In this document: positions 4,779 through 64,000 of the stretch, one piece after another
Layout: every line of letters starts with the position of its first letter
Position numbering within the stretch: position 1 is the first letter of the stretch
DNA from: Pavona decussata
Taxonomy: Eukaryota
DNA: 64,000 bases
Assembly (NCBI GenBank): GCA_977016875.1
Contig: CDRNST010000414.1
Coordinates: 62,001-126,000, forward strand
Direction of reading: 5' to 3'
Made by a program: the position numbers and the translations under genes
The notes under the pieces: model-generated
The model's database searches: none
The model's input: the letters and a program-made list of their open reading frames with translations, nothing else
Told to the model about the DNA's origin: nothing

Positions 4779-7700
4779 GTTAGTAAGAATTTTTCCTTCT
4801 AACGACTTGTAAATTTTTTAAACATCCGTCTTTTTGCAATACCAGTATCTCGTGCATTATGGCAAGTCTGCGAAGAGCGACTTTTCCTTGAACATTTCGC
4901 TTCACTTCTTAAGTTTCTTTTAAATTTTTCCTAAAACGTCCATATCTAAGAGCCGTTTATACTTAGACACAGGCGGGTGTGTTTGTTTGTTTCTATTCTT
5001 AAGGATACTTTACATTACGCAGTGATTTGCAAGTACAAATCGACTTTCCAAACACACCTCCATTAATGTTGTTCATTGATCATTGGTGTTGTTCTTGTAC
5101 GAAATCAAAAAACCTTGATTTTCAATTTGGAAATAAGTCATAGCCATATGCCCTGATAGTTCAAACATGTGACTTTGCTTAATCAGGGAGCAAAAAGTAC
5201 GACAACATTCTTCTACTGTTCATTGTCTTGCCAGCATTAATTTACGTAAAGAACAACTCCAGCGGCAACAAAAGCCTAGTTGTATATTTTTTAATTGAAT
5301 CGGGTCAGTGTTAGCAAGTTAGTTGCAAAAGAAATATTGAGAAATATTTAATCAAGATAGTCATCCAATTTGTATCTAGTACAACACTTTTGAGAAAGAA
5401 TTTTATGTGTAAAATAGTGTGCATATTACCACAATAATAATCAATTAAGCAATTTGAAAAGTATGCACCGTTGTACGTGACAAGAAGTCAGATTATTTTT
5501 AGTTCTAAGCTTGTTGGTGATTCGCTAATTCGCTAACTATCTGTTTGTATTGTTCAAAGTAATAAACTGATCGTACGTACATGAATTACCGTAGATACAG
5601 CTTGCCTGAAAGTTTCTCGAAAAGTTAATTTCTACTGACAAACACAACTGTATTAAGGGCACCGCGTGAACAGTTGCATTTGCACGTGGGGCAGGAAGTC
5701 TGACAATGAGTTTCACGTGTTAGTATTCACAGCTACAGAAACCAAGGTTGCCAGTTTATGCCCTTTTGGTTCCCGTTTACAACTGTCATAAATATACGCT
5801 TTCCTTGTTGGCATTGATCGCGAATCAATGTCGTCAGCGAAATAATTTTGTTTTTTCTTGAATCCGGTAAAATATATTCACAGATCCAATCTTTCATGCA
5901 TGGAGCTCAAAATATTATTGTAGTCATTTTCGCTCAGGGTAATAATCGTACGGTTAATGATTGCTGAGAATATAAATGACGATATTACAAACGTTTTAGG
6001 TGTGTGCGTCGGCAATTTCAGTGAATTGGATCTAAGGAGAAAGTCAGTGGTCGCCGCTAAGGACGTCCGCGCTAATTGTTTATGCAGTGCGCAAGTAACG
6101 CACACGTCACGCAATGTCACGCGCAATTCATTGTTGACGATACACGGAGGAACACGAAGGTAAACACATATGTCGACTGATATGAGAGCATTAAAAGAGA
6201 GGAAAAGGGGGAAAATTCATCTCCGTTGCACAGTTTAGAAAACAAAAACTCGACGTGAAACGATTAGACGGGTTAAGGTTGCTACAAAGTGTCCAAGAAA
6301 AGGCGTTGATACCTGAGGATATTTCGCGCCAAGAGATTTATATATTTACTTCACTCTCGATATAACAAAATTATTGAAATGCAAAACTTTATGTGGTCTA
6401 TTCGTCATACGAAGTCACCTTAAAGCTTTTTTAAGTTTTGATAGTAAACGAGAAAGTCTTAACTTACAAGAGAGCAATTTTATTGATCATCAATCCCGTG
6501 TACAATATCAATCTCCACATATTACCCATTCTAGGTAAATAAATAAGCTTACTTCTCACATTTTCGCCTCGCTAACGACTATAGATGTATTTTCTTGGCA
6601 TTGGCTAAACAGCGGTATAGGTTTTGAAGGTATAATAACAATAAACTACTTAAACTTAAACTAAGGGATAGATAACCCTGGTTTGTCGCTAGTCTTCTCC
6701 GACCTGTCACGCAAAAACGTGACTTGGAAATTTGTCAACACAGCTACTACTTTGTCTACATTATAACTCTCTAAAATGTTCGGTGACCCCAACTTTTTTT
6801 TTTTTTTTTTTTTTACAATTGATCACTACTATCTTTATCTATTGTCTACGTTTTAGGGAAAAATGAAAACAAAATCTATGGTGCAGAAGTTTGATTATTT
6901 TCTATTTTTCTGTCCACGCGCCGACCTAGCGCATTTTCGAAACAAAAAAAGCGAGAACAAGAAAAACATTAGCCTAACACTTTTCATGTTTCAATCCATT
7001 CCGACCTACTCTGTCGTCTCTGGCCAGAGGCATTATTCGACAGTTTTATTGCACTGGGGTGATAATTTATAACAAACTTGACAATTATTTCTTTGTTTCT
7101 GCTGACAGACAAACATGTTTGGGTTTTTAAATGACATCAAATTCCCGTGATACTTCCCCTTTAAGTTAGGTAACTTAGGAATTTCCCTTACTACCTATAT
7201 CTCCATTGGCATTGATATTTATCTAAACAGCTCTCTTTTGTTAGGTACTAAAAACTTTGGAGAATCAAGTCCTTGCATTATGCCGGACGTTTTCCACGTG
7301 AACATATTTTAATGGCCGTAGCTCATATGAGTCTCCTATAGCTCGGTGGTAGCGCTTCCAAACTAGTAATCCATGGGTCATAAGTTCAACTCCTGCAGTT
7401 TCTGAATTATGCGTGTGTCACTGGCTGAATAGCACATCATTTTCAACATTTCCCAATGTCTTCATTTTCAGCTTTGGTCGGTTCAGCAACTTTGGGGATG
7501 CTATGGTTTGCAAGTCCGCTGGCTGGCTATCTCTGCGATCGCTTTGGTTGTCGAATTGCGACATTTTATGGAGGGGTGCTATGCATCACGGGCTTGCTGA
7601 CGTCGTCATTTCTTCAGAGCCTCACTCCGATGTACTTCACATACAGTTTGGTGCTTGGCTTGGGAGCTTGTTTTATATTCACTTCCTGCTTTCTCGTGAT

Positions 7701-9881
7701 TGGAAAATATTTTGAAGAAAAGTTGTCCATGGCTACTGGGATTGTATCATTGGGTGCAAGCTTGGGTGTTCTTTTCACAGGACCATTGCTTCAAGTACTT
7801 TTAGACTCGTTTGGATGGAGAGGCACTTTAAGGATAATGACAGCATCTTTCGCTTTGGTCTGCATCCTCAGTCTGGCTTTCAACCCGAACGTGGAAAACA
7901 AAGTTCAAGTTGACACAATAACAAACAATGAGAATGAAGAAAAGGAAAGAAAGGGAATCTCTTTGTACTGCAGCGTTTGGACATTTCCTACTTTTACTGC
8001 GATCGTGACTTCCTTAACATTAGCAAGTTTTGGAATTTTCATCATTTACATCAATTTGGTTAGTCGATAAATTATTTGAATGTAACCTAAATCTTATTTA
8101 GCTCTATGTAACAGGAAAGGGAACGAGAGAGTTAACTTACTTGCTACGAGCTAGAATAACGTCATCTCCAAAAGTAAAATGAAGCGTACCGCCCTATAGC
8201 AAATTAAAGCCATAATCGTAGTGCAGCCAAATTTATTCGACTCATTTAGCATATATATTTCTCAATACATTTCCTGAATGTATCTTTAAACATACCTATA
8301 ATTATGCTCAAGTAGTTCTTGATTGACGTAAACCTTACACCGACGGACAATCACTATAACCAATCAAAACAAACGACAACAGCATATTGAACGAATCAAA
8401 ACTTGAAGCAGGAATGCGAGCAAGTTGCAGTTTGTTTTCTTGTTGGTTGAAAAAGAGGCGTCATTGTTTTTTTCCATCACACATCATATCACAGTATGTG
8501 TAACACTAAGTTTAAGGCAACCATGATTACGTTACTTTCAAGATGACAATCTCTACTGATATGATTCTACTTTTCTTCCTTAGGTTAAGTTCTCTGAAGA
8601 TATTGGAATCACGCCACAAGAAGCCTCTCGCCTGTTTATTTTCATCGGCATTGCTTCATCGATGACACGGCTGGTATCAGGAAAGTTGTGTAACGAGAAA
8701 ACTGTGAATCCCGTTTACATTTATCAAGCATCTGTGCTGGTAGCGGGCCTTTGCGTGTTTCTGCTGCCATTTTCCACAAATTACTGGCATTTAATTGCCT
8801 TCAGTGTTACATATGGCCTGAGCGAAGGCGTTTATACAACAACGCATCATTATATTTTGCTTAAATGCGTCGATGTTAAGAGAAGAACAGCGTCTTTTAC
8901 CATCAACAATGTGTTTTATGCCGTGGCTGCAACGGCTGGTGGGCCTATTGCTGGTAGGTTATTGGTGTATACAAAACTTAGGCTAGGCTGTAGCCCAGGC
9001 CATGACCNNNNNNNNNNNNNNNNNNNNNNNNNNNNNNNNNNNNNNNNNNNNNNNNNNNNNNNNNNNNNNNNNNNNNNNNNNNNNNNNNNNNNNNNNNNNN
9101 NNNNNNNNNNNNNNNNNNNNNNNNNNNNNNNNNNNNTACCATAGGGTGGGCCATTAAGCTGGACCATGGCATGATCTGCATGGCCTAGCCCAGTTTTTTG
9201 ATACACCTGTTGGTTACTGTTCTGTATGGAGGCTCACAGCAATTTTTCTGGACTATAAAGGGTGGAAGTTTGGAATTTACAATCTCGCATTGAAGACAAA
9301 ATGCGATCTCGTTTATACTACATCATCATTTCAACATTCATCAAAATTAATTGTTCGTTTTTCTCTAAGCAACAACTATTACCATAGCAACGGTAGCACA
9401 TAGCCTCTCATTTAAAACGTTGTCGATTATCTCGAAATCTTTAGACAGGAACTTTATGGCGAAACTTTAAGCATTTAAACTACTCGAACAATTTTTACCG
9501 GGCTATTTTGTTTCCTTTTAACTATTGACAGTTTTGTCCAACACCAGCACTCTCAAATGAAACGGGATACCAACTAGAAAGCCGGCTAATACTATCGATA
9601 CCTAATTTGAGGAGGAGGGTCAACGACTACAATAACAGCAAATACAAAAAAAACATTACTTTTCAATTTCACTTATAGACATATTATCCTCGTCTTCTTT
9701 TACAGGTCTCATAGCCGATCAGACGGGAAACTATGTTTATTCGTTCTACATGACGGGAGGTGCGCTGTTGACAGCATTTTTAATTCCCATGGTATTAATA
9801 GTTATCAACAAGAAACAGTCAAAAGTTCATCCCCAGAATGTGGTAGAAGTAGTAACTGAGAGCATTACTGTTAAACCATAA
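4574..9881 (+). CDS. SLC16 / monocarboxylate transporter family MFS protein (MCT10-like), 4 exons, about 445 aa
   Basis: Exons 4574-4778, 7472-8058, 8584-8953 and 9706-9881 have GT-AG boundaries and consistent phases (1338 nt). Motifs: DSIFSWVVC (TM1), AGYLCDRFGCR (MFS motif A), YFEEKLSMATG, FGWRG, GGPIAGLIADQTGNY. Confidence 0.92.
7330..7445 (+). mobile_element. Degenerate tRNA-derived SINE abutting the exon 2 acceptor
   Basis: gtctcctaTAGCTCGGTGGTAGcgc...aaGTTCAACTCCt; same family as the copy at 1340-1490. Confidence 0.65.
7472..8058 (+). CDS. SLC16-like exon 2
   Basis: Acceptor ttttcag|CT; ALVGSATLG...IIYINL; donor |GTTAGT. Confidence 0.92.
8584..8953 (+). CDS. SLC16-like exon 3
   Basis: Acceptor ccttag|GTT; VKFSEDIG...GGPIA; donor G|GTAGGT. 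Confidence 0.92.
8964..9207. mobile_element. TIR element spanning the assembly gap (N run 9008-9136)
   Basis: Left end ggtgtatacaaaacttaggctaggc is the near reverse complement of the right end gcctagcccagttttttgatacacc. Confidence 0.6.
9706..9881 (+). CDS. SLC16-like exon 4 (terminal)
   Basis: Acceptor tttacag|GT; GLIADQTGNYVYSFYMTGG...TVKP*. Confidence 0.9.
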
Positions 9882-17777: not shown

Positions 17778-18248
17778 TTACCCATTTGTTTCCTTTTTGT
17801 CTAACTTTGCCAGTACAGCATTTAGTTTCTCCTCCAAACTTCTCTTTACTTCAAAAATTTCATATTTCACCTCAGCTAGTTCTGACTTAACATCTTGAAG
17901 TTTTAAATCCTCGTGAACGTCTGCAAGGTTAGATTTAACCTCAAAGCGAACTACTCCCTCTTTTGTAGACATCACATTTTTACAAACATCGTCCAGATCA
18001 GATTTCATCTTGGCAAGGTCCGATTTCATCTGGGTAAATTCACATTCAAGTTCAGATTTTACCTCTTGAATTTGTAAGTCTTCGTGAACAATTGCAAGGT
18101 CGGATTTCACCTCATGCCGAACTACATCTTGTTTGGTAGATATCAACTGCTTGCAAACGTCGACAAGTTCAGATTTCACCTCCGAAAGATCAGATTTCAA
18201 CTCTTGAATTTGTAAATCTTGAAAGTCAACATCTTCCCTCGGACACAT
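17778..18248 (-). CDS. TRP-SPRY terminal exon: repeated heptad coiled coil
   Basis: tttcag|ATG TGT CCG; [20 protein letters not shown]...KKETNG*. Confidence 0.85.
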   Translation of the reverse strand: MCPREDVDFQDLQIQELKSDLSEVKSELVDVCKQLISTKQDVVRHEVKSDLAIVHEDLQIQEVKSELECEFTQMKSDLAKMKSDLDDVCKNVMSTKEGVVRFEVKSNLADVHEDLKLQDVKSELAEVKYEIFEVKRSLEEKLNAVLAKLDKKETNG

Positions 18249-42200: not shown

Positions 42201-45150
42201 TTTTACCTATTTAACGGGTCCTTTGGGCCAGAGATATAATTTTTGGTATTCCCTTCAAGTCTAATATTTAACAATTAGATTATTCGCTCTCGATTTCTAT
42301 CGCGTGATAGTTGATGAGGGCGAAGCCCGAATCAACTATCACGCATAGAAATCGAGAGCGAATAATCTAATTGTTTTAGTATAAATCTACTAGTCGTTCA
42401 AAACTAAACAAGTAAATTATCTATTTCCCCATCGCAGACGCTTCGAAAACGCGAAGAAGCGGGCGCCATTTTGTTGAAAATCGCTACTCACTATCTATCA
42501 CAGAATAGATAGCGAGTAGCGTAGCCAATCAGAGAACGGCATTCGTGATAGAACACTAGTAGATTTATACTAACAACTATTAGAAACCAAAATGCTAGCA
42601 GAGCCAGAAGCCCTATACCGTAGTCGTTCTTAAGATATACGGGGACCACACAGTTGAGGATCTTAACTGCAGTTTCCATCAATAGCATATGCATATACAG
42701 CAGCTTGGAGTATTCCTACTACCCCCTGGATGGCGAGCTTATTAAGCTTATTAAGCTTATTAGTCCATTGCAGTGTTACCGCCAGCAATTTGTCACTGAT
42801 GCCCACTGATACTGATACATCTGTGTAGAAGACTTTAATACATGTACGTGTACAAGTGTATATCGACAAAATAATTGTCATGTCTAAGGAGACAACACAC
42901 CAATGCAGAGACCAACCTTAGACCCTCAAGCGATCAAAAACCTTAATCTTCCAACTGAAAGCCCTGTGTGAAGTCTGACACAATAACCACCACAACACTA
43001 CTCCTCCAATAAAGACAAATACACATACAGTAGATCAAATCTAGCACAGGCTGGTTGAATGGTGTTATATATATTTGCAAGAGCTCTCAACTGTGGATTG
43101 CTTGGGAAAGTAATTTGAACATTTGCTAGAATGAGTTTATATTTCCTTTATACAATGCATCAGTAATCTGCTCATTAATTAAACTGTCAACACTCAAAAT
43201 TTATTAACATTTTCCTGTCTGTCCTTTTCCATTTTGCCTCTTTCTCTCCTTAATTATTAGTATTAAATACTAACGACTGCTTCTTATAAACCTCATCCTA
43301 CTTTATAACTTATCTACTTATATTATTTGATGCCTTTCATTTCCCTTTTTTCTTTCCTCCCTTCCATTTATCATTCAGTTCATGCACATACCGCTGTTTT
43401 GTTCACCTTCAATTGATACAGCAAGATATCCTTGATGTCCTTTACCTTCTGCAACAGCATGTCTTCCTATACACACAGTAAAACAGCAAATTACTTAGCC
43501 ATCTAAAGGATCACTTGTTTAGACTTCCTATTATAGCTTTTATCAGTGTGGTTCAGCTCAACTTGAAACAAACCACGTGTCCAACAGGCCAGTGAGAGTG
43601 GAATCTTGTCAATAGAACAGCAATGCTTAACCCTCTAACCCCTAATATCAAAGAACAAATCCTCCTATCTTGTCCCCATACTTTTCTCATAAAAATACTG
43701 GGGAGAAGTTATTAAAATATCAAGAAAATTCACCTTGGGGCTGATCATATCCTTAATTCTCACAACCTAAGGGTTGAATAAGCATTGATATTACAAGGCA
43801 AAATTTGATGCTGATCACACTTTAAAAGGGTTAATTAAAGGAGACAAGGCTGTAGACTAGGTTCAAGTCAAACAAAATATTTTTGTGGAACCTGTGGGTG
43901 GGAAGGGGGATTGCCAGAGCAACATTAACACATGATTGGAGAAAAATTCAAACTACATTACTGGACTAAAATGCTGCCTGCATCATGCACAAATGGAAAC
44001 AATTCACTTACAAGCTGCACACTGAACGATTGCTGACAGCACATTGTACTTAATTGGGCTGGGAAAATTTGCAGACTGAAGATTGTAGATGTAAATTTGG
44101 AGTAAAATACAGACTCTAGACTGTAGACTCTGCAGATTGAACACTGACGACTGGGGAGGGAGGGGTGGATAATATATAGACTGCAAACTAACATGGAGAT
44201 TGAAGTCTGCAGACTAAGTATAAAAGTATGGACTGATTTCCTGCTTAATTACAGACTGCTAGCACACTCTAAACTGTAGACTGGAAGTAAAATGCAGACT
44301 GCAGGCAGTACAATTTTGGGTAGAGACAAGCAAAATTCAGATTGCATCCCACAGATGACTTGGAAAGGGGGGGGGGGGGGGGGGGGGAATGACCATGGTC
44401 CACAAACTAAAGCTTACTTGAGATCAATATGGACATTATGGGGATGTTTAGCCTAGGAGGTACCATCAGTAATATTTTAAGGCTTACCAGTAGGCCTGCA
44501 TGCATTCAAATTATTAAGCCTAATAATCTAGTAATCGATAAATTAACATTGTGCATGTGCCATGTGAATACATTCACATGCACATTATATAATGAAACTA
44601 TTATTACAGACTTCAATTGCCCTGTGTTTAATCACGCACTCACAATAACCAGACAACAAGAGGTTTGGGCAATAAGTTCATTAAGTCAGGTTTTACTGCT
44701 GTAAAATGAGTAGCAAATGACGTCATAGCTGAATCAATAGACTCCCATGGGAGCGAGGGTCGGGTTGAGTCATGTGTTTGCCCTATGAAATAAGCTTATG
44801 ACTGACCGATCAACAAAGCTCACGTTCCGATAAGCTTAGTGACGTCATATGACATGCGCCTAATTAGCAAAAACCGCTAAATGTAATTAGTTCCCATTTA
44901 TTATAGAGGATCTGTTGCAGTTTGTTTAGTTCTAGTCACTGCCACTGTGACTAAGGGCTTTGTTTATCCTTTGTCATTTATTTATTTTCTGCATAGTGTG
45001 AATGGCTTTGAATGTGAATGGCTTTGAATCTTTTACATCACTGTTTTTCCTTTTATTTCCTTACAGGGGAAACTTGAATTCACGCCAATCCAGGCATTTA
45101 ACTTAGATGTATTATTTGACAAATTTACCTGTACTGAAATCGTTTTCCAT
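17778..45150 (-). CDS. Group-1 TRP cation channel (TRPC-like core, no ankyrin repeats) fused to a C-terminal SPRY domain and coiled-coil tail; 20 coding exons, about 1010 aa
   Basis: Exons in transcript order: 45129-45150, 43446-43466, 42016-42064, 41737-41874, 40156-40220, 39572-39708, 39150-39350, 37817-37979, 36348-36392, 35949-35990, 35167-35422, 34090-34443, 31406-31598, 29849-30025, 26909-26990, 26353-26474, 24173-24283, 22280-22448, 19682-19896, 17778-18248. All are GT-AG and phase-consistent, total 3033 nt, with no internal stop seen. TRP motifs: [57 protein letters not shown]. Confidence 0.88.
19682..19896 (-). CDS. TRP-SPRY exon: SPRY C-terminal half
   Basis: [31 protein letters not shown]; GT-AG boundaries. 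Confidence 0.88.
20125..21203 (+). mobile_element. Helentron/DINE-1-like non-autonomous element (second family)
   Basis: 5' subTIR AGCGGAGCTCC plus a partial inverted repeat, a CGAC/CGTA microsatellite at about 20235-20275, 3' subTIR GGAGCTCCGCT and a short stem-loop. Confidence 0.6.
21795..21990. repeat. Hairpin / inverted-repeat element
   Basis: aatagattccattttgccgtgggtctgtactctgataacgca pairs with tgcgttatcagagtacagacgcacggcaaaatgaaatctatt. Confidence 0.75.
22059..22156. repeat. (GGTAT/GGCAT)n pentanucleotide microsatellite
   Basis: Direct reading. Confidence 0.95.
22280..22448 (-). CDS. TRP-SPRY exon: SPRY core
   Basis: [32 protein letters not shown]. Confidence 0.88.
23015..23292. mobile_element. 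Harbinger-like MITE
   Basis: Ends ggcgctgttac / gtaacagcagc, with an internal inverted pair atgtaacatgccctgaaat / atttcagggcatgttacat. Confidence 0.6.
24173..24283 (-). CDS. TRP-SPRY exon: SPRY start
   Basis: [33 protein letters not shown]; phase 0-0. Confidence 0.82.
24637..26033. mobile_element. 1.4-kb non-autonomous DNA transposon with long TIRs (TA flanks)
   Basis: TA|caccgtattcacaaatggcgga ... tccgccatttgtgaatacggtg|TA; imperfect inverted similarity extends about 300 bp. Confidence 0.8.
26353..26474 (-). CDS. TRP-SPRY exon: linker helix
   Basis: [22 protein letters not shown]...LLPTGSK. Confidence 0.8.
26909..26990 (-). CDS. TRP-SPRY exon: rib-helix-like segment
   Basis: [27 protein letters not shown]. 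Confidence 0.78.
28348..28700. repeat. Inverted-repeat / hairpin dispersed element
   Basis: ttattacacccattttgaaa / tttcaaaatgggtgtaataa, followed by an imperfect hairpin ggtaattgaact...agttcaattacc. Confidence 0.65.
29509..29665. repeat. Hairpin dispersed element
   Basis: atatcaaacac..gtgtttcatcagatatccaaacacc pairs with ggtgtttggttatctgatgaaacac..gtgtttgatat. Confidence 0.7.
29849..30025 (-). CDS. TRP-SPRY exon: TRP box region
   Basis: [12 protein letters not shown]...[10 protein letters not shown]. Confidence 0.92.
31406..31598 (-). CDS. TRP-SPRY exon: pore helix and S6
   Basis: [15 protein letters not shown]...[20 protein letters not shown]. Confidence 0.92.
33555..33767. repeat. GA-rich polypurine low-complexity tract
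   Basis: About 200 nt almost purely A/G on the + strand. Confidence 0.9.
34090..34443 (-). CDS. TRP-SPRY exon: S3-S5
   Basis: DRWNYFDFG...[13 protein letters not shown]...VGTIQIALF... Confidence 0.92.
35167..35422 (-). CDS. TRP-SPRY exon: S1-S2
   Basis: [20 protein letters not shown]...[19 protein letters not shown]. Confidence 0.9.
35949..35990 (-). CDS. TRP-SPRY 42-nt microexon (phase 1-1)
   Basis: Pyrimidine tract ending aaag|; [14 protein letters not shown]; donor |GTGAGT. Confidence 0.6.
36348..36392 (-). CDS. TRP-SPRY 45-nt microexon (phase 1-1)
   Basis: tgtgcag|; [15 protein letters not shown]; donor |GTAAGT. Confidence 0.68.
36422..37090 (+). mobile_element. 5'-truncated CR1/L2-group LINE (RT C-terminus, ORF 36448-36954, 3'UTR)
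   Basis: [52 protein letters not shown]; tail aataaacttaaacttaaaaaaa. Confidence 0.88.
37386..37645. mobile_element. IS630/Tc1-like fold-back MITE
   Basis: TA|cagctgtttcgacaaaggttgtcc ... ggacaacctttgtcgaaacagcta|TA with arms of about 110 bp. The loop encodes [15 protein letters not shown], like a transposase start. Confidence 0.75.
37817..37979 (-). CDS. TRP-SPRY exon: pre-S1
   Basis: [17 protein letters not shown]...[18 protein letters not shown]. Confidence 0.88.
38749..39106. mobile_element. Harbinger-like MITE
   Basis: agggagttttagcaacgcgacggcga ... tcgccgtcgttgttgctaaatttccct. Confidence 0.75.
39150..39350 (-). CDS. TRP-SPRY exon: helical linker domain
   Basis: VTEKL...[14 protein letters not shown]...[11 protein letters not shown]. 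Confidence 0.88.
39572..39708 (-). CDS. TRP-SPRY exon
   Basis: ERPTRRKW...[12 protein letters not shown]. Confidence 0.82.
40156..40220 (-). CDS. TRP-SPRY N-terminal exon
   Basis: [22 protein letters not shown]; phase 2-1. Confidence 0.7.
40426..41570 (+). repeat. Tandem duplication of about 140 bp (second copy split by the hAT-like element)
   Basis: 40426-40566 matches 40568-40605 plus 41467-41570. Confidence 0.85.
40606..41461. mobile_element. hAT-like non-autonomous element with a 5-bp TSD (hAT5-type)
   Basis: GCATA|CAGGCGCGTAG ... CTACGCGCCTG|GCATA. The empty site is visible in the tandem duplicate at about 40459. Confidence 0.78.
41737..41874 (-). CDS. TRP-SPRY N-terminal exon
   Basis: [10 protein letters not shown]...RDKLSRIHI; phase 2-2. 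Confidence 0.68.
42016..42064 (-). CDS. TRP-SPRY N-terminal 49-nt exon
   Basis: [16 protein letters not shown]; phase 1-2. Confidence 0.62.
42263..42575. repeat. Dispersed element with a near-perfect hairpin of about 50-bp arms
   Basis: aacaattagattattcgctctcgatttctat..gtgatagttgat / atcaactatcac..atagaaatcgagagcgaataatctaattgtt. Confidence 0.75.
43446..43466 (-). CDS. TRP-SPRY 21-nt microexon (phase 1-1)
   Basis: tatag|GAAGACATGCTGTTGCAGAAG|gtaaa. Confidence 0.5.
43631..43830. mobile_element. Short piggyBac-like MITE
   Basis: TTAA|ccct ... aggg|TTAA. Confidence 0.55.
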
Positions 45151-56149: not shown

Positions 56150-56910
56150 AATGGTCTAGATAAAAGCAGTGAGGAAATTCATTTTATGAAAAACAAGACA
56201 CTCCTGAGTTTTACAACAGACATGTTTCGGCAGTTGCCTCTGCCATCTTCAGTGTGAAATGAACTCGTAACAAATTACAGTGGAATATAAATGCTAAAAA
56301 AAATACAATAATAATAGAAACAATTAAGACAATAACAATAGTAATACAAAATTAAACAGAAAGTTTTAAATTAACGTGTTTGATTTGTGCGTTGAATGTA
56401 GATTTTTCCCAAACTATGTGCAACGCCTCTTTGATTTTAAGGGCAAACCGCGTGGATGCCTGATCGATGATGGCAAAATTGTCGCGGGAGCATGCAGAGC
56501 GACATGCTGGCGAAGTCTTCAGATGTTTGAAGATGTGTGAGGCCCTTTCCGTTTTCAAGTGTTCCCTTACACGTGTGTTGAAATGTCTGGTGGTCTCACC
56601 GACATAGCAAGATGTACAGCCTGCGCACGAAAATTTATAAACCACACATGATCGGAGTCCATTGGGGATAGGGTCTCTCACAGTAAAGAGGCTACCTACT
56701 TTGAAAGAGGAAAACGCTAACACTTTTTTTGTATTATTTCAATAGAAATGTGAAAGTCGACGAATGCGCTTTTGAGCGATGCTAGAAAAATAACCCATGT
56801 AGGGTAATTTGAAATAAAAGGTATTAGGCGCTTGTTCATCAGTTGATCTTACATAGTTGCCTGTTACTTACTGAGTGACACTGTGGTTAATGATTTTTTC
56901 TATTAGCTTG
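56150..56910 (-). mobile_element. Penelope-like element 3' fragment (GIY-YIG endonuclease + pLTR)
   Basis: VVYKFSCAGCTSCYVGETTRHFNTRVREH...LKIKEALHI..K..FNAQ (56352-56723). Confidence 0.9.
56216..56255 (-). ncRNA. Minimal type I hammerhead ribozyme (Penelope pLTR)
   Basis: Minus strand: aca-CUGAAGA-u-GGCAG-aggcaa-CUGCC-GAAA-cau-GUC-ugu. Confidence 0.75.
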
Positions 56911-60002: not shown

Positions 60003-61304
60003 CATGAGGAGCCGCGTAGAGGTGTTAAAACTAATTAGGTTGAGTGACGGTTGCTATGATCGAATTCCTGTTCGAAAGCAGCAATCTATCAACAGTATAG
60101 TAAAGAATCTTTTTCAGTCGCGTGTAATGTCTGGATCGAGCTTGCCGCAAAGCAATGAAGTTTTTGTTACTAGAAAGCTTGGCTTCTGTGGAAACGCACA
60201 GTTAACTGGAAACGAAAACTCCTGTGATCTGTCCAAAAGCCTGACTACACATCGACTGTCGGAAACGGAAAAATGACGATTTTTGCTAAAGGTTTTCGTT
60301 TCCCGCCAATCTAATTGGCGCGCTAAATGATCCTAAATCGACGAACCATAACATGAATGATTTGTTCGCCCATGGTCTCTACGATGGAAATTTAGAGTTT
60401 AATTTTCGGCAAGCTAATTTTCCTCATCATTTTCCAATAATTGAATGAAAAATAAAGTCAATCGTCATCCTCCAGTGGTCCGCAAAGGTAAGTGCGATTT
60501 TTATGTTTACGTTATATATTTGATCAGCACTCGCGAATTCGTGATTTGGGAAAAAGTGTAACGGCGTCGATCACCAGCTTCCATTTCCCACGTGTGTAGG
60601 AACTCTTACAATCAGAGTCAAAACAAAATATATTTTTAAAATGCCTGTTATGATGATATTGTTGCGGTACCGTGTTACTGTACACGTTAGTATTTCAGAC
60701 GGTAAGACCAAAATAAATGATAGATACTGGCAATCAATGTTCACCACGCTGAGTGCGACAAAAGTGTCCAAAATACCGGTTAAATATTTATGGTTTTATT
60801 GTGTAAAGGTAAAAGACATACATGATACTGTTAGGTCACAGTTGTTCTCTCGGGTGTGTCGCCTGAGAACAATAAGCAATCGGGTGCGTCGCCTTTGCTT
60901 CGTGAGCTAACTCCGATAATAATATTAGAAATTTCTTCACAGAGAGATTTTAAACTCGGCCGTTCTTATCTCGGGTGAGTCGCCTGATAAGGACGAGCAA
61001 TCGGGTGTGTCGCCTTTGCTTTGCCGTGTTTAATACTCGCTGCACATCGACGATAAATTTATTTTTCTCCGGGTTTTTGAATTTTCCGGAGGTTTTTGAC
61101 TGAACCGGAAATATTCGACTGCACGCAGTGAGTGAATGTTGATTGCTGTAAACTTTTTACAACGTTAACGCACTGGAGCTCGTATTGCACCGAAAATGTG
61201 GTTCTAAATTGTCAACAGCACTCCCGTAAACAATAGGCCTCCTGTAGTGATCGAGGAAAAATTTGGATGGCAAAATCGGTTGCTAAGGCGTGCGGCTCGC
61301 CATG
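60003..61304. mobile_element. 1.3-kb TIR element nested in a MITE
   Basis: Termini CATGAGGAGCCGC / GCGGCTCGCCATG. It interrupts a MITE (59941-61435) whose uninterrupted relative is at 58344-58490. Confidence 0.65.
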
Positions 61305-62022
61305 AGCGGCAGTAGTTCATAGCGGAAAATAATTTCAGTCAAACGTCTAAAATTATTTTTGCCGGGATTTAGCTGCTGTCCGTATTATCGGGGTGTCCGT
61401 AATATCGAGGTGTCCGCAAGGCGAGAGTTGGCTGTGGCTGTAGTTCTCTGACGCCCGATTTAGAAGAGAACATGCGCAACAACTGAGAATATATGCCTAT
61501 CCTGACTGGCGTCCATTCACTCGCTATCGTATTACGTATAATGTAAACTGATTTCAGGGGCATTCAACGAGAAAATTTTAGGAAAATACTCAAAACGTTG
61601 TCTTCTCTGTTCTAAGATCGTTTTGTAGCCTTTTTTAAAGGCATATTTGTTTAAAACTAATACAGTATGATCTGTTTGGACGCTATAGCCCAAAATTTTA
61701 GTTACAGAAAGTTTGTTAATAAGTGAACGGAATTCTATACCCCGAATTTGCCAGCTCTCCTTTTACCATTTTTAGCGAAATAAAAACGAAAAGAATTAGT
61801 TTTCCAGTGCTGCTAGGTTTTTAGTTTCAATTTTACTAAAATCAAATATTTGAGGCGATTAAGGCCTTCTGAAGAGATGTTCACCAAACTGAATCGTCGA
61901 GTGCCCCTGTGATTTGTCATTCATACCTCGTAACATCGCTACCTTGTTTCTGTCTGAAACTTTAGCAATTATAAATGGCTCTGTTACTGACAAGGAAAAA
62001 CAAAGCAAAACATGATGCAGCA

Positions 62023-62262
62023 CTACAATCCTACTTCTGAGTCTTTGCTTTTTATGCACAGCTTCTCCTTATCTTTGATCTTTCGCTCATTCATTTTTCT
62101 TCTTTTGTTTTTTTCGCCCAACTTCAGGAGCACGGCATCTAGGGTTTCCTGCAGTTTTGAGCATTGGCTCTTAATATCTGAGGCTATCTTCTCCTCTAGG
62201 GCTGCAAGTTTAGATTCCTGCATTTTGGAGCATTGGCACTCAATATCTTCCTTCGGGCACAT
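62023..62262 (-). CDS. Terminal exon of a paralogous TRP-SPRY gene (rest lies beyond the window)
   Basis: ttttcag|ATG TGC CCG AAG GAA GAT (MCPKED) matches MCPRED at 18248. LEEK..LDAVLLKL matches [12 protein letters not shown]. Same strand and phase. Confidence 0.72.
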   Translation of the reverse strand: MCPKEDIECQCSKMQESKLAALEEKIASDIKSQCSKLQETLDAVLLKLGEKNKRRKMNERKIKDKEKLCIKSKDSEVGL

Positions 62263-64000
62263 CTGAAAAGATCCATTAAAATCGTCATTATGTTGTGAAG
62301 CGAAGCCAGGAAAAGAAGAGTTAGCAATAGAAATTCACACGCTGTAAATTACGTATTTAGACGAGGAATAAGCTTAAATTATTAACAAATACATCCATGT
62401 ACAAATTGATGCATGCATGCACACAAAGCTAAATCATTATCAGTAATAAAACGAAGGCGAATTCTTGCCGGCTGTAATTGTGCTATTGAACAAAATTCCA
62501 CAAGAACTAGCAAAATAATGCGTCTTTACTTGTTTCCTCCAAAAAATTATAAAGTATTATAAAGTCAGGAATCCAGAAGTTATTAAAAACAATTCGCTGG
62601 CTTTTGAGACCCCCATTGCTGTGTTCGTTAGGGTTTGATTACAATGGATACCCCCAAACAAGGTTCAACACCCGACTATGATGTTTACGCAAGTTAACCG
62701 ACTTATTTCAGAGTTAACACTGTAAAAATAAAGTTAAAAATCAAAATACTGTACACCTGGAACCCTGGTTCGTTGGTTTTACATGCATATTTTCAGAGAG
62801 TTAGCCAAGCGGTTAGAAATGCTACTCCCTTCGTTGAGAGTTTCCACAACGAATTGAACTGAAGACATTTCCAACGTTTTGTGGAGTAAACATATTTTGT
62901 ATACTCAAAGAAATTGGAAATAATTCGAAGCAATAAGTTTACGAGAAACAAATCGATCGAATTGGTCTGTCCTGATTTGTTTTAAATATACAACAGGCGG
63001 TGTGCGCCACGAAATTTGACCTATCAGAACGCGTTGTTTGATCAGTAGTTTTCGCGTCCACTAACACTGATCAGTCCGGAGAGGTTAGCCTGTTTAAAAT
63101 TTCGTCGTTAGGGAAGTCTGTGATACATTTTTCCCGATTTAAATTCGTTTGAAGTTAGAGGAGTAAATTGGCTTAGTGCTGGTTAAGTTACTTTTCAAAT
63201 TGAAGTGTTTGTTCGCGTTTGTAGCTATGTCAAAGGAGATGACCTCGCGCCTGCCACCATGTTGTTTTGATTGTTGAGTTATCGCTTTTCTTGAGGCTAC
63301 AGCTACGTACTGTTGCCGGGTTTTGCCATTTCTTTCTCTTTTTACACATTAAGCTTGCTTATCCTTTCTACTTGAGAATTTTCGGAGTCTTCCAGGGTCT
63401 ACCCCTTGTGGTTTTCCCGTTGGAAGCCATTGAACTTATAAAGAATCTATGATGAGATGGTGTAAACCAAGTGGATCAACTGCCGGGAAACCGGCTGGAA
63501 AAGCCTACGAACGAATGCTCGAATGCTATTTTCCTCCAACAAATCCAGGAAAGAAAAGTAGATCTCTTTCAACCTAAGATTAAAAATGGGCAAAAACAAT
63601 AAAACATAGACTGTTAGTAGTCGTTCTTTTTTTTCCTCCAGATCATGCGCACTAAGTGGCGGTAAAATTATGCAAATTACGAAAGTGAACTCGTTGCTCG
63701 CGGCTTCACCCGCGCTCGCTAGATCCATCGCGCGCGATAGAACTAAGGAAAAGAGAAAGCCTGCTCGTGTTCTAAATAAAAAAAAGCGTCTAAAGGCAGA
63801 CGTGACGGCACATTATACTAGTACAGTAATAAACATAATAAAATTCTCGCCTTCGATTGTCTCCGAACCGCGAATAAGCGTAACTTATCAGTTAACGAAG
63901 TCGCCTTGTGAATCCAACAAGAAGCATCTACGGCTTATACTAGACCTTTTAGATTTGCCGCGTTACTGTCTTTATTGATACTTTGTAGGAAAGGAAGAAA

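Follow-up and report, generated by a model that had tools for sequence, protein, structure and literature searches.

The last exon of a second TRP-SPRY gene in Pavona decussata and the probable stop-loss origin of its basic tail

Exon structure and splicing of gene 2

The window, by which we mean the whole 64,000-nucleotide stretch analysed here, corresponds to C414:62001-126000, C414 being a contig of 220,786 bp in a 602-Mb assembly of Pavona decussata; the best protein matches of the locus are from stony corals and one sea anemone. The last exons of two genes, referred to as gene 1 and gene 2, lie on its minus strand (Table 1). The gene 2 exon reads MCPKEDIECQCSKMQESKLAALEEKIASDIKSQCSKLQETLDAVLLKLGEKNKRRKMNERKIKDKEKLCIKSKDSEVGL up to its stop codon, begins with MCPKED directly after TTTTCAG, and carries the motif LDAVLLKL. 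Translated in six frames, the 64 kb contain MCP(K/R)ED and L(N/D)AVL(A/L)KL just twice each, in these same two last exons, where they stand in the same order and on the same strand. The SPRY exons upstream in both genes end AAG/GTAAG (slashes mark exon boundaries) and both last exons begin after TTTTCAG/ATGTG, and these matching acceptors and donor ends place the intron in phase 0 in both genes. The open frame, the MCP(K/R)ED start, the L(N/D)AVL(A/L)KL motif and the shared acceptor phase described in the initial annotation are thus all confirmed by the sequence and the scan. The size of the open frame alone is not significant, with 37 ORFs of at least 40 aa in 6 kb, and a Pfam scan of the gene 2 tail exon gives no match; that of the gene 1 tail gives weak coiled-coil-like noise only. 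Exon, acceptor and frame are kept at four further loci (one each on contigs C6 and C389, and two on C258), among which the indels are in-frame and fall in the helical part only.

The exon had been taken for an orphan, and it is not one: six open, collinear minus-strand exons of the family lie upstream of it, beyond base 64000 (Table 1). They were found by comparing C414 beyond that point with the exons of gene 1 and with P0092, a full-length relative from Montipora; the gene 2 exons were searched singly, and codon alignments were pooled only for counting substitutions. Positions beyond the window are given as extended coordinates, which carry the window numbering on past base 64000 of C414. 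Where exon matches contain stops, these fall in the polypyrimidine/AG sequence immediately preceding the exon and are therefore intronic. The last SPRY exon ends AAG/GTAAGA, and on C6, C258 and C389 too the tail exon comes after a SPRY exon.

Table 1. Positions of gene 2 features and of the gene 1 last exon, in window or extended coordinates
Feature	Position	Strand	Remarks
Gene 2, S6 pore-helix exon	extended 89244-89444	-	also L006:5244-5444
Gene 2, exon of TRP box and following helix	extended 85810-86049	-	open
Gene 2, linker exon	extended 80732-80893	-	open
Gene 2, three SPRY exons	extended 77557-77691, 72854-73030, 69269-69484	-	open
Gene 2, last intron, 3' part	62263..64000	-	runs on to extended 69268 (C414:131268); about 7 kb in total
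Gene 2, polypyrimidine tract and AG acceptor	62263..62283	-	…GGATCTTTTCAG/ATG; intron phase 0; acceptor kept in all four other copies
Gene 2, last coding exon	62023..62262	-	79 codons and TAG stop; C-terminal helix after the SPRY domain
Gene 2, codons 52-79	62026..62109	-	inserted Asn codon, two codons shared with C6, Lys/Arg-rich read-through from codon 55
Gene 2, codon 55	62098..62100	-	AGA (Arg); homologous C6 codon is a TGA stop (nucleotide alignment of copies)
Gene 2, 3' UTR	61407..62022	-	616 nt or more, to the end of the run X2 contig
Gene 1, last exon (comparison copy)	17778..18248	-	begins MCPRED; ~3 helical repeats, each ~45 aa

The locus was also compared with three RNA-like sequence runs (X1, X2 and X15) and a DNA run (X16) that may derive from the assembly's own sample; one RNA run with pieces of the stretch carries the label 'coral metagenome', and since the run data are contigs they do not give strand or expression level. 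Record 31 of run X2, a contig of 1180 nt about 95% identical to the window, aligns to 61407-62264 and departs from the genome at the acceptor, the end of the match being uncertain by the 2 nt of the AG. The 30 letters that follow belong to the last SPRY exon, whose 3' end they match exactly in the C6 copy and with one mismatch at 69271-69300; the joined reading is …FKHANTVLAK/MCPKED…. Intron bins at 62347-62702 have no depth in X1, X2 or X15, and X16 covers everything. The spliced contig represents a different allele, about 95% identical, with a 45-nt in-frame deletion and the usual stop kept; the long form seen in the window is matched only by one 96-nt, depth-2 unitig of run X1. An origin of the 45-nt deletion by unequal exchange between 23-nt internal direct repeats was considered and set aside, the spacing of the repeats being 69 nt. 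The presence of a second TRP-SPRY paralogue on the same strand, as the initial annotation had it, is upheld by the S6, TRP-box and SPRY exons upstream together with the RNA contig spliced from SPRY to tail. Searches past base 64000 and genome-wide found TRP and SPRY exons rather than their absence, and a SPRY exon rather than an unrelated gene as the splice partner.

The run X2 contig ends at an abundant repeat, at about 61279-61456. Depth rises to a very large peak over this segment in each of the four runs, RNA-like and DNA, and many contigs break there; it is an abundant dispersed repeat in or just past the gene 2 3' UTR. A further dispersed repeat, with at least 35 genome copies at 76-79% identity, occupies 62995-64000 within the last intron. 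Elsewhere in the window, a minus-strand open frame at 56352-56738 has a GIY-YIG-like motif (…SCYVGETTRHFNTRVREH…) and relatives on L004 at 33-34% identity, and by eye looks like a Penelope-type retroelement endonuclease. Two plus-strand open frames at 7456-8070 and 8662-9144, the second entering a masked stretch of 129 N, look by eye like exons of a multi-pass transporter, of the MFS or monocarboxylate-transporter-like kind.

A TRP-SPRY channel family of anthozoans

The gene 2 S6 exon (67 aa) matches only TRP channels in the PDB (best E 8e-5), including Nanchung/Inactive, TRPC3/4/5/6, YVC1, NOMPC and TRPM2, with E values of 1e-4 to 1e-3 against the TRPC4/5/6 and TRPM2/TRPM7 structures, and as a 67-aa piece it scores 23.1 bits against the 25-bit Pfam cut-off for Ion_trans. 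The stretch directly after S6 (…/QDNSRNEWAFKKAITIQTY…), called as a TRP box by alignment and motif rather than with a dedicated model, aligns with the relatives and through them with the TRP helix of TRPC4 and TRPM2. When the SPRY exons are compared singly with Pfam the last one alone matches, weakly (E 0.023, 15 bits; cut-off 26.3 bits). All three align at 42-57% identity to residues 573-742 of Desmophyllum P0091, a range that encloses the Pfam SPRY match of that protein (616-738, E 5e-12), and by homology through P0091 gene 2 is assigned to the SPRY family (PF00622). Gene 2 is a member of the TRP superfamily, and its C414 copy, in which S1-S5 are absent, cannot encode a channel by itself.

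Among 1.84 billion protein representatives there are 86 matches to the gene 1 S3-S5 exon, and all of those whose source was looked up are anthozoan (stony corals or Nematostella); the long ones have Ion_trans followed by SPRY in Pfam. The relatives used here are from Montipora foliosa (XP_068673868, P0092), Desmophyllum pertusum (KAJ7323454, P0091), Stylophora pistillata (XP_022789481, P0044) and Nematostella vectensis (EDO31100, P0062). These anthozoan proteins, named 'short transient receptor potential channel-like' or uncharacterised, share with gene 2 the exon order S6, TRP-box-like EWAF(Q/K)KA, linker, SPRY and helical tail, the pieces being 42-70% identical. Unlike them, the C414 copy has a basic extension beyond the lost stop and no N-terminus-to-S5 half; the helical segment of the gene 2 tail is also shorter than that of gene 1 or of the Montipora protein. 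The 'TRPC-like' names are automatic annotation. Because no Pfam Ank domain was found in the full-length relatives P0092, P0091, P0087 and P0089, we describe the family as TRPC/TRPM-like rather than TRPC; a TRPM homology region was likewise not detected in the anthozoan relatives by Pfam.

Between pre-S1 and the TRP helix, Montipora P0092 matches structures of the TRPM2 chanzyme and of TRPC4/5/6 with E values of 1e-17 to 1e-12, and TRPC4/5/6 and TRPM2/TRPM7 (5z96, 7b05, 8sr7, 6bwd) are homologous to the coral family from pre-S1 through S6 and the TRP helix. The coral family differs from TRPC and TRPM channels in having a SPRY domain between the TRP helix and the terminal helix, and we know of no solved TRP channel with this arrangement. 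In TRPC and TRPM channels the C-terminal helix forms a coiled coil in the tetramer. The SPRY domains of the ryanodine receptor and of TRIM/B30.2 proteins belong to the same fold family (PF00622), a cytosolic protein-binding module that is in one case also carried by an ion channel; the sequence kinship is limited to the domain, and here a single SPRY follows a six-transmembrane TRP core. A full-text literature search on TRP and SPRY in corals or cnidarians returned nothing relevant. Gene 2 is a further member of a family that databases already predict and that is not known to have been characterised.

Copies of gene 2 and variation of its tail

The whole genome has at least 45 S6-like and at least 23 SPRY-type exons, near-duplicate contigs being counted in, and genes of the gene-2 type are found on C6, C414 (partial), C258 and C389. 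The second gene does adjoin gene 1 head-to-tail, as expected of the tandem array that had been proposed, but the array amounts to two genes and an orphan tail fragment. This fragment, at C414:59055-59291 (-) and 2.7 kb before the window, is a copy of the gene 1 tail with a counterpart at C6:7463908-7464153 (+); it comprises the last ~83 residues at 80% identity and ends LNAVLANLNKRT before a stop, with no acceptor, MCPRED start or nearby channel exons. A second orphan, at C258:57600-57797 (-) (L021:7595-7798), is a gene-2-type tail exon with an intact acceptor whose stop has been independently lost; it reads …GEKKNEEGMSAKSNEKVKVYMKRKDSSSY before terminating, its read-through enters a stretch homologous to the basic extension in the window, and no family exon lies within 22 kb upstream of it. 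A genome search with the Desmophyllum tail gave no match, and one with the Montipora tail gave weak matches only, adjoining SPRY exons on C258, C341 and C328.

Contig C6 (7.6 Mb) carries a complete gene 2 at 7357463-7398990 (+) followed by gene 1 at 7417489-7437092 (+), the end of which (C6:7436625-7437092) is an allele or duplicate of the gene 1 tail, 97% identical. C414 and C6 are collinear, in inverted orientation, over ~92 kb at a nucleotide identity of 91-95% and an exon dS of 0.03-0.06. The collinearity ends at extended 90750, ~1.3 kb upstream of the S6 exon, and beyond this point are transposon remnants and a repeat unit of ~1.5-1.6 kb that has arrays on other contigs. In tblastn with P0092 and all gene 1 pieces, the 72 kb upstream of gene 2 gave no match to residues 1-525, and a genome-wide search with the S3-S5 exons of gene 1 and of the C6 gene 2 found, on C414, gene 1's exon only. 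All seven of the retained gene 2 exons on C414 are still open. When changes are polarised with C258 and C389, the C414 branch shows 13 nonsynonymous changes and 7 synonymous ones and the C6 branch 4 and 6, respectively, a difference that is not significant (Fisher p = 0.26). Seven of the 13 C414 replacements (Q11K, N21D, P24H, V32I, V37K, L40R and A53G) fall in the exon of the TRP box and the following hydrophobic helix, three of them inside the conserved EWAFQKA…YHP(I/V)P stretch. Raw C414-C6 dN/dS values (0.43 and 0.62) rest on few changes with some intron overhang and were kept out of the inference. The C414 gene 2 is most likely an incomplete and probably decaying version of the C6 gene, either a haplotype variant or a recent duplicate.

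Several repeats surround the end of the collinearity. A 310-bp element at window 42264-42573, in an upstream intron of gene 1, is 97.7% identical to C414:154220-154529, which lies shortly upstream of the gene 2 S6 exon and ~1.5 kb past the point where the collinearity with C6 ends; it matches itself in reverse over ~105 bp at 88% and looks like a small inverted-repeat mobile element. Also upstream of the truncated gene 2, C414:156001-157539 (L007:1-1539) is 96-98% identical to head-to-tail arrays on C694, C74 and C379, an arrangement by which the ~1.5-1.6 kb unit is classed as a long-period satellite. Tandem Repeats Finder reported microsatellites only at the collinearity break.

The gene 2 tail contains an amphipathic C-terminal helix with a heptad pattern, as judged from an AlphaFold2 model and a shuffle test. 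The model has residues 4-77 as one helix with a mean pLDDT of 91, and the a/d heptad pattern over residues 23-50 was reached by 14 of 500 shuffles, which is a modest signal; the tail of the Nematostella relative gives a weak match to the HSBP1 coiled-coil profile. The triplicated repeat of gene 1 is replaced in gene 2 by a shorter helical segment, and this segment varies between copies by in-frame indels. The tail is 40 residues long in the RNA allele of run X2 and in the C258 paralogue, 59 in the C6 copy, 63 in the C389 paralogue and 79 in the window copy as assembled (~54 without read-through), compared with 156 in gene 1. Three tail forms of gene 2, of 40, 59 and 79 residues, may segregate.

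The basic stretch had been described as standing in place of the triplicated repeat; it is instead appended after the conserved LDAVLLKLGEK end. Tails of the gene-2 type end with LGEKKR (C6), LGEKKDDE (C389) or LGEKKDEE (C258 and the RNA allele), each followed directly by a stop. At the SPRY-to-tail junction the orthologues read …VLAK/MRARDE… (Montipora), …VLVK/MCSRED… (Desmophyllum) and …VLTK/MCHRDR… (Stylophora). The Montipora tail ends LDAVLAKVGEQQNE and that of Desmophyllum has VEDVLAILKDILKKDPPKV, each before a stop, and the Stylophora end is without that motif, such that a motif like LDAVLAKVGE or VEDVLAIL is present in two of the three aligned relatives, all of which stop soon after the helix. 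Overall the other full copies and the orthologues stop 3-9 residues past an LDAVLxK-type motif. The window copy alone runs on, through a change of TGA to AGA, a 1-nt deletion near 62073 that bypasses the next stop, and an in-frame AAC insertion. No such read-through is seen in the C6 copy, in the paralogues on C258 and C389, in the transcribed allele or in the orthologues. With TGA changed to AGA and one base lost, translation enters an A-rich former 3' UTR: residues 51-79 include 12 K+R among 29, and their DNA is 54% A against 33% in the first 150 nt of the exon. The stop-loss is probably a real variant and no homopolymer error, because a 121-nt unitig of DNA run X16 equals the window exactly over 62010-62130; a second X16 unitig has the C6-like form.

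The frame past the normal stop is open for 13-50 codons in several copies (62023-62100, C258, C389 and the X2 allele), continuing after the stop as M(N/S)ERSKEKEKLCIKRK…, which explains why loss of the stop gives a long extension. This open stretch is most likely due to chance in purine-rich sequence. Programmed stop-codon read-through was considered and is unsupported, the stretch being purine-rich and the C6 and C389 copies closing the frame early.

Readings of the basic tail

We consider it probable that the exon is the genuine last exon of gene 2, that it encodes a helix and has lost its stop, and that the C414 gene is a partial and likely non-functional copy with a functionless basic tail. 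On this account gene 2 lies upstream of gene 1, head-to-tail on the minus strand, its last SPRY exon spliced in phase 0 to the tail (…VLAK/MCPKED…), and the tail forms a single long amphipathic helix. TRPM, TRPC and TRPA channels carry C-terminal coiled coils, and by analogy the tail helix most likely bundles with the helices of the other subunits under the pore axis, aiding assembly or subunit selection. In the C414 copy the ancestral stop has been lost, so that Lys/Arg-rich former 3' UTR is read as ~25 extra residues. Of the gene only the 3' half, from S6 through TRP box, linker and SPRY to the tail, is present in this copy, which is therefore most likely an incomplete, non-functional version of the C6 gene, and the basic tail is in consequence probably without function.

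Were the gene 2 on C414 instead a complete working allele, its 5' exons would have been lost from the assembly by a misjoin in transposon-rich sequence. This we hold to be unlikely, although the collinearity of C414 at 91-95% with 92 kb of C6 is as expected for an unpurged haplotig, the break sits in transposon remnants near the satellite-like ~1.5-1.6 kb unit, all seven retained exons are open, and DNA run X16 holds both tail forms. However, the break does not coincide with an assembly gap (N run), and the assembly contains no second exon nearly identical to the S3-S5 exon of the C6 gene 2, the next best matches, on C258 and C389, being 95% and 94% identical; the C414 copy also combines an excess of replacements at conserved TRP-box residues with a lost stop. 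A dead relic, that is a duplicated tail fragment outside any transcript, seems hardly credible to us: orphan tail copies do exist, at C414:59055-59291 and C258:57600-57797, but the exon at issue has six family exons upstream in order and in frame, and the orthologous junction is used in RNA, in the spliced run X2 contig.

The initial annotation had seen in the KNKRRK tail a diverged oligomerisation module. This does not hold, as it is a read-through in the C414 copy, with 54% A and no equivalent in other full copies. The broader proposal that the tails diverge stands for the helix, whose length differs between paralogues by in-frame indels, and fails for the basic KNKRRK extension, which is a product of stop-loss. 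That the extension is a selected functional tail, binding for example membrane lipids, calmodulin or importin, is very improbable. Its ~25 extra codons are open and are modelled as helix, the homologous stretch is likewise read in the orphan at C258:57600-57797, and an exact DNA unitig backs the window form with no obvious homopolymer error. Against this, the extension is absent from C6, C258, C389, the transcribed allele and all orthologues, requires two recent mutations, and is carried by a gene copy without its front half, and a 54% A content is what is expected of a translated A-rich UTR, where stops are rare by chance. The basic tail thus probably has no function. Variation in helical length through in-frame changes fits fast-evolving tails, but we think it improbable that tail lengths and stop-loss together make up a fast-evolving 'assembly code' that decides which paralogous subunits co-assemble.

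These findings settle the gene structure at the locus: gene 1 stands in tandem with a second gene whose last exon is built alike, and the splice from SPRY to tail is confirmed by RNA. They also call for two cautions in annotation, in that near-duplicate contigs, partial copies and orphan tail exons in the assembly affect counts of the family, and that a striking 'new' tail can be merely a lost stop read into an A-rich UTR. The in-frame variation of the helical tail among alleles and paralogues would matter if the tail controls subunit assembly.
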